This document shows, in pieces, positions 36,525 to 36,780 of a stretch of 64,000 nt of DNA. Source of the stretch: Orbicella franksi (taxonomy: Eukaryota); NCBI GenBank assembly GCA_964199315.1, contig OZ116698.1, positions 5,084,001 to 5,148,000 of the forward strand, read 5' to 3'. Numbering within the stretch: position 1 is the first letter of the stretch; each line of letters starts with the position of its first letter. The notes under the pieces were generated by a model. It was given only the letters and a program-made list of their open reading frames with translations, had not been told where the DNA came from and searched no databases. The translations under genes and the position numbers were made by a program.

Positions 36525-36780
36525 CTGTATTGCCGAAGGCCCTACCATTTTGGTGCGGTTTTTGCTGTCCCTCTTTGATTTTTGGTAAGTTCGCCAGCTT
36601 TTGGCTGGTTTTTGTGGTTTTCCTAGCTTTCTTGGGTGCCATATTTCCTTCGAGCTTTCTTGTCAATTTCTTGGTTACCCATCCAATGTTTGGTTAAGCC
36701 GGGTCACCCATCCATTGGGGTCTTTGGCCATCTGGGCTTAGCCTTTTTTCCTTTGCTTGGCTTTTTTCCTTGTATCCATC

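Follow-up and report, generated by a model that had tools for sequence, protein, structure and literature searches.

Antisense 5S-like box A and box C words conserved in the 5′ UTR of a U1-specific LINE from Orbicella franksi and its relatives

We analysed a 64,000-nt stretch of the Orbicella franksi genome (hereafter the window), in which Rfam models detected two U1, three U2 (one of them partial) and two 5S sequences. The intact array unit has the order U2 (plus strand), U1 (plus strand, 44926-45089) and 5S (minus strand, 45976-46093). As predicted from the sequence beforehand, the gap between AAGCCC and TGGAT is 19 nt in both 5S genes, which also have in common TTTAAAAG near −30, CCCCTTTCTCTT before +1 and T-run ends.

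45976-46093, minus strand: genuine 5S gene of the array unit (Rfam), running against U1 and U2 and hence in the direction of the pseudo-boxes of the LINE described below.
54120-54236, plus strand: second 5S copy (Rfam, lower score), altered after about nt 97.

The second 5S copy lies inverted relative to the canonical unit, the region 53876-54218 being 88.7% identical to 45995-46337 reversed, and past about nt 97 of this copy a sequence resembling the U1 3′ flank takes over.

Two copies of a LINE, which we call family C, lie in the same window: C1 at about 12102-17774 and C2 at about 36525-41488, 69-76% identical in a self-comparison of the window. C2 is preceded by the U1 upstream flank and U1 nt 1-19, and behind the A-rich tail of this copy U1 resumes from nt 3; C1 has the same kind of 3′ end, abutting a complete U1, and starts at its 5′ end after the tail of another element. 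As the junctions of C1 and C2 lie at U1, family C is a LINE that specifically targets the initial bases of this gene.

36506-36524, plus strand: U1 nt 1-19 at the 5′ junction of C2 (target-derived leader), from comparison with the intact U1 at 44926.
36525-36780, plus strand: 5′ UTR proper of C2, from alignment with C1 and eight fetched copies.
36781-37419, plus strand: N-terminal part of C2 ORF1, with its ATG at 36781; downstream of this part the element is disrupted.

For the N-terminal segment of C2 ORF1, 30 homologues were found. Nine loci with relatives of family C were obtained via ORF1 homologues and five more via a pattern scan of metagenome contigs, which returned 120 loci, mostly chance matches, with only L053, L083, L093, L070 and L056 being related. 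An APE endonuclease domain (Exo_endo_phos) was found in C2 and a reverse transcriptase domain (RVT_1) in homologous loci. U1 junctions were found in C1, C2, L008, L009 and L083, the last three being clean insertions behind the U1 upstream flank in other assemblies, and L002, L006 and L053 begin behind the tail of another element. The C-type copy of L005 (1-560) is preceded by tandem repeats of about 35 nt (TTACCTTAGTACCTTGCGCACTCTGTTTTAAGTT type) and not by U1; these repeats could represent another target or a 5′ monomer extension.

Judged by its domains and insertion site, namely an APE endonuclease, an ORF2 with reverse transcriptase and a single site in a repeated gene, family C would belong to the Tx1 clade. 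Like the Tx1-clade families Keno (U2) and Mutsu (5S), it is a two-ORF APE-type LINE that uses a single site in a multicopy small-RNA gene and stacks head to tail (PMC4494074, PMC5340908). Its target, U1, is however absent from the target list of PMC4494074, and we found no published description of a U1-specific Tx1 element. Family C also has a 5S-like module in its UTR, whereas no such module is described for the Keno and Mutsu families in PMC4494074 and PMC5340908; within the window, the module was not found in other Tx1-like 5′ regions (52550-52800 and 54240-54900).

The original prediction placed an antisense 5S-type box A/box C pair with native spacing in the 5′ UTR of both copies, and its reading of the letters was accurate. 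On the minus strand, C2 reads GGCTAAGCCC, 19 nt and TGGATGGGTGACC (36744 down to 36702), and C1 reads AAGTTAAGCCC, 19 nt and TGGATAGGTACC (12364 down to 12323). The spacer is indeed unlike 5S, with about 1 of 11 middle bases in agreement compared to 27 of 30 in the flanks, and the module does lie shortly before ORF1, the A-box word ending 36 nt upstream of the ATG in C2 (36781) and 35 nt upstream in C1 (12400). The additional C-box reported for C2 is likewise present.

36734-36744, minus strand: box A-like word of C2, AGGCTAAGCCC, matching the 5S word AAGTTAAGCCC at 9 of 11 positions.
36715-36733, minus strand: 19-nt spacer of C2; its A-box side (AGATGG) resembles 5S nt 60-66 and the remainder is unlike 5S.
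36702-36714, minus strand: box C-like word of C2, TGGATGGGTGACC, matching at 12 of 13 positions the 5S copy at 54198-54210, which ends in T.
36692-36700, plus strand: sense A-like word GGTTAAGCC, inverted-repeat partner of 36736-36744.
36673-36685, minus strand: second box C-like word of C2, TGGATGGGTAACC, with one mismatch; found in most relatives.
12354-12364, minus strand: box A word of C1, AAGTTAAGCCC, exact.
12323-12334, minus strand: box C-like word of C1, TGGATAGGTACC, minus-strand reading from the pattern scan.

The pattern TAAGCCC-N14..24-TGGAT matched only four times, in C1, C2 and the two 5S genes, each time with 19 nt, compared to 0.09 matches expected from shuffled sequence (128 kb, both strands). 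For the 13-mer C-box word with at most two mismatches, seven matches were obtained against 1.18 expected, five of them in LINE 5′ UTRs or 5S genes; TGGATGGGTGACC itself occurs exactly at 36702-36714 and at 41853-41865, in the 5′ UTR of a second LINE family (family A), and with one mismatch at 36673-36685 and in one 5S gene. The boxes of C1 and C2 match the 5S words of the window itself, that is, the host variants. By our arithmetic, about 0.001 occurrences of both full words (at most two mismatches each, spacer of 17-23 nt) are expected per window, and because of this low expectation and of the second, differently arranged instance in family A, a chance origin of the 5S likeness is excluded.

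Local alignment of the 5′ UTRs to both 5S genes always returned 5S nt 41-90 and always in antisense orientation, with z scores of 5.5-5.9 for L002 and L005; four further copies gave p values of 0.01-0.05, and C2, taken alone, gave p 0.15 with this generic scoring. The A box agrees with host 5S nt 50-64 at 13 of 15 positions in C1 and L002 and at 11 of 15 in C2. Box C is exact over its first 13 nt in C2, L006 and L008, and its 3′ part (GCCTGGG) is absent, as is the intermediate element, which would fall in the divergent middle of the spacer. Beyond the C box and the A box the likeness to 5S did not rise above that of shuffled sequences, the region downstream in L008 (p ~0.04) being the only exception, and no Rfam 5S match was found in the C1 and C2 UTRs up to E 10. 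A long 5S relic, with likeness continuing upstream of the C box or downstream of the A box, was rejected on this ground. The likeness is confined to 5S nt ~47-90, where box A is retained in full and box C over its first 13 nt. In TFIIIA, fingers 1-3 mediate strong binding to box C, whereas box A is bound weakly, and the retained 5S parts, box A and the portion of box C read by fingers 1-3, are ones that this factor contacts in 5S genes (PMC12409998).

The module was found in C1, C2 and 11 relatives (L002-L009, L053, L083 and L093) from other coral assemblies and metagenomes. Conservation of the boxes across copies, which had been proposed as a check, was evident: over nine copies, box A had the highest mean pairwise identity of the UTR (0.92), compared to 0.77 in box C, 0.70 in the spacer and 0.61 in the remaining UTR sequence. 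The conserved blocks of the 5′ UTR alignment comprise GTATGGCCGGAGGCCCTA, the splice-donor-like TGGTRAGTTCGCC, the YY1-like GCCATNTT, the first antisense C-box word, the sense word GGTTAAGCC, the second antisense C-box word, and GCCCATCTGGGCTTAAC with a T run, which is the antisense A box. The module lies within a small array in which C-box and TTAA words recur, at the 3′ end of the 5′ UTR, and each UTR holds two to three C-box words (three in L008). The E-box, AP-2 site and G-quadruplex were rejected as identities of the A-box hairpin, since its variants across copies keep none of these motifs. No 5S genes were found in the fetched loci that would allow co-variation between LINE boxes and host 5S to be followed.

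Spacing behaved differently from the boxes. Expressed as the distance from AAGC to GGATGG, 22 nt in the native arrangement, it was distributed as follows.

22 nt: C1, C2, L003, L004, L006 and L053.
21 nt: L083.
23 nt: L002, L005 and L009.
24 nt: L007, L093 and L008.

The native distance is kept in six copies, lies at 21, 23 or 24 nt in seven and falls to 1-5 nt in family A. The native spacing emphasized in the original prediction, whose conservation was a further check proposed there, is a trait of one sub-lineage and not of the module. In L009, L093 and L070, GGATGGG follows directly after AAGCCC inside the A-box hairpin, and in L001 and L070 the C-box word is lost and the A-box hairpin kept. 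A further metagenome locus, L045, was rejected as a LINE relative and is a diverged 5S-like sequence: at 7440-7560 this coral-associated contig carries both boxes at an AAGC-to-GGATGG distance of 23 nt and a T-run end, without an Rfam 5S match at E 0.01, and may represent either a pseudogene of 5S or some repeat derived from it.

The words recur in family A, whose ORF1 is ~30% identical to that of family C. Here they are fused, with AAGC-GGATGG distances of 1-5 nt, about 900 nt upstream of the AUG, and degenerate copies recur in tandem monomers of the 5′ UTR, a layout typical of LINE promoters. L056 has the fused form as in family A.

41853-41874, minus strand: compact module of family A, AAGTTAAGC abutting TGGATGGGTGACC without a spacer, from word searches.
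42380-42405, minus strand: degenerate compact module in a 5′ UTR monomer of family A, AATTAAGC, 5 nt and GGATGGC; a second one lies at 6318-6343.

The words have been kept in two anciently split families, A and C, with variable geometry. The 5′ UTRs of mouse and human L1 are monomeric or YY1-type internal promoters. The coral elements resemble them in carrying repeated short words of the factor-binding type, in the monomers of family A, and GCCATNTT upstream of the module, in family C; they differ in that the repeated word is 5S-like and the binding factor a candidate only. One family A copy, at 5788 (5788-5801), sits in the 3′ part of another element, and its 5′ truncation point coincides exactly with the beginning of the antisense C-box word (GGTCACCCATA...).

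Our preferred explanation, to which we give slightly less than even weight, is that the module is 5S-derived, or mimics 5S, and has been kept as a protein-binding site of the 5′ UTR, with TFIIIA as a candidate, and is not an antisense Pol III gene. A 5S-type protein-binding site is plausible because the parts retained are those that TFIIIA contacts in 5S genes, because they follow the host 5S variant and because they are conserved across species and in two LINE families. The retained TFIIIA site of the original prediction stands to this extent as a putative protein-binding site, whereas the native spacing invoked for it holds for the nearest relatives only. An antisense piece of 5S (nt ~47-90) would have entered an ancestral LINE, either as an antisense 5S/LINE chimera, comparable to the 5S/L1 chimeras of mammals, or by capture from read-through transcripts of the array, in which 5S is antisense to U1. 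The module would then have been kept through protein binding on DNA, in the element's promoter or in chromatin control, with TFIIIA as the leading candidate for the C-box word. Several observations count against this explanation. The fused arrangement of family A is incompatible with canonical binding of the nine-finger TFIIIA, so the binder may be another factor; the C-box word is lost in L070 and L001; the module lacks the 5S nt 1 that L1-type chimeras normally have at their junction; and the family C module lies 35 nt before the AUG with a possible stem in the sense RNA, so that a role in RNA would fit as well. The more specific proposal that a domesticated TFIIIA site in reverse orientation drives or protects the LINE's own Pol II transcription, or tethers the element to the 5S-U1-U2 array, seems unlikely; if true, it would mean that a Pol III control region has been turned into a LINE promoter.

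The role in RNA would be that of an element in the sense transcript upstream of the ORF1 start, with the conserved words serving as arms and loops in a small fold (a stem GGUUAAGCC / GGCUUAACC around a C-rich hairpin and GCCC-N4-GGGC), acting in translation or RNP assembly, and with the 5S likeness reflecting origin only; we consider it doubtful. Beside the short distance to the AUG in family C, it is favoured by a 9-bp stem GGTTAAGCC / GGCTTAACC that is 91% paired in nine copies and has one covarying pair (GC, GU, AU, UG). G-U cells in the stem number eight in the sense reading and three in the antisense reading, and RNAalifold predicted the stem on the sense strand only. However, the consensus energy is weak (−11 kcal/mol) with a covariation term of about 0, the stem score was reached by 17 of 500 shuffles, and the distant, monomer-borne position of the module in family A does not suit an element of the ORF1 start. 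An RNA structure also leaves the identity of the words to the 5S boxes unexplained.

If the module were instead a neutral relic, a single old antisense 5S capture decaying with no present function, its origin would have a precedent, since retrotransposition is known to yield antisense 5S/LINE chimeras as by-products (PMC13174262), and the loss of the C-box word from L001 and L070 would be expected. Yet the decay is uneven, with boxes at 27/30 and a middle at ~1/11, conservation within the UTR peaks at box A, and the words survive in families with ORF1 proteins as far apart as those of A and C. We consider such a relic quite unlikely.

The suggestion that the module is a working antisense promoter of the type 1 Pol III class, with TFIIIA, TFIIIC and TFIIIB assembled on the boxes and an antisense RNA starting near 36792, fared worse and appears very unlikely. 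What the module has in common with the 5S promoter is box A, the portion of box C read by fingers 1-3, the order of the two and, in some of the copies, their distance, but it has no intermediate element, box C 3′ part, upstream and start context or terminator, and its spacing is variable (PMC12409998). Box order, orientation and the 19-nt spacing are native in C1, C2, L003, L004, L006 and L053, and in C2 an ATATAT stretch lies ~25 nt upstream of the predicted start. Elsewhere the spacing drifts to 21, 23 and 24 and collapses in family A, and TTTAAAAG / CCCCTTTCTCTT of the genuine 5S genes are missing from the LINE at matching places. Within the UTR, the antisense strand lacks T4 runs, so that nothing of this kind would halt Pol III early, and a conserved terminator is absent. 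Rfam searches up to E 10 returned no 5S hit. The predicted start is crossed without a step by contigs from two RNA runs (36570-36815 and 36691-36887), at a depth of 3-17 compared to >1000 for U2; these contigs carry no strand information, and such strandless low-depth data give no hint of an abundant Pol III product. Two poly(A) RNA runs searched as raw reads yielded 0 reads. An antisense RNA would moreover harm the element, yet it is the element's lineage that conserves the module.

Highly improbable is pairing of the sense LINE RNA either with nt 48-59 and 77-89 of 5S rRNA or with 5S genes opened beside the U1 target, which would leave the spacing free to vary as observed and is suggested by the perfect complementarity of each word over 11-13 nt and by variants (A to G in GTCRCCC, AACC or AACT, TTAGC) that would retain pairing through G-U, but transitions are the commonest neutral change as well, and both segments are base-paired within folded 5S RNA.

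The protein-binding module that we favour can be set beside two kinds of known 5S-bearing retroelements. In mammalian 5S/L1 chimeras the 5S piece is antisense to the LINE and truncated at nt 46 and 90 (PMC13174262). The ends at nt 46 and nt 90 belong to loops C and D of 5S, respectively, and the coral module, antisense and 5′ of the LINE body as in chimeras of the twin-priming type, ends at ~47 and 90. Each chimera is an isolated dead-end insertion whose 5S piece begins at nt 1 (PMC13174262), whereas the coral module is internal to the 5′ UTR, inherited and conserved in several species; between the A-box word and the ATG no likeness to antisense 5S nt 1-48 was found, and the module has no nt 1 junction. 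Retroelements of the SINE3, Cassandra and Helenus type carry 5S in sense orientation (PMC4494074; bioRxiv 10.1101/2023.07.14.548913; PMC10886601). They share with family C the box A and box C words of the host's own 5S within a retroelement. They contain, however, a near-complete sense 5S and are transcribed by Pol III, in contrast to the coral words, which are antisense in every copy and lack the intermediate element. Unlike SINE3 and Cassandra, the coral LINE is autonomous and has many T runs on its sense strand, so that it is not transcribable by Pol III in the sense direction.

We found no published description of a conserved antisense 5S module in a LINE 5′ UTR: known retroelements with a borrowed 5S promoter all carry it in sense orientation and are transcribed by Pol III, and antisense 5S on LINEs is known only from dead one-off chimeras. 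New here is an antisense piece trimmed to the words that TFIIIA contacts and conserved in an active, target-specific LINE lineage of the 5S-U1-U2 array. If a host factor binds the module, a chimeric by-product would have become a LINE regulatory module, and a Pol III factor would be linked to the control of a Pol II-transcribed element that parasitizes snRNA genes. If nothing binds, a well-documented conserved 5′ UTR motif remains.

Three further observations concern the 5′ region of the element. In a contig of RNA run X15 over 36522-36745, the C-like 5′ UTR ends just past the A-box word and continues into U1 nt 4-18 and the start of family A; this junction may be a deletion via CTT microhomology or an assembly joint. 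A splice-donor-like GGTAAGT or GGTGAGT stands ~60 nt into the 5′ UTR (36584-36590 of C2), also in C1 and L002-L009, with an identity of 0.86, and in family A at 41603-41609. This block complements the U1 5′ end (ACTTACC), which forms the leader of every full-length copy, and this complementarity might allow pairing in cis with that leader or binding of U1 snRNP. Finally, ~60 nt upstream of the 5S-like module lies a YY1-type core, GCCATATTT / GCCATCTT, at 36638-36646 in C2 and in the 12283-12291 region of C1, with an identity of 0.83; in family C this block is reminiscent of the YY1 site in the human L1 promoter.
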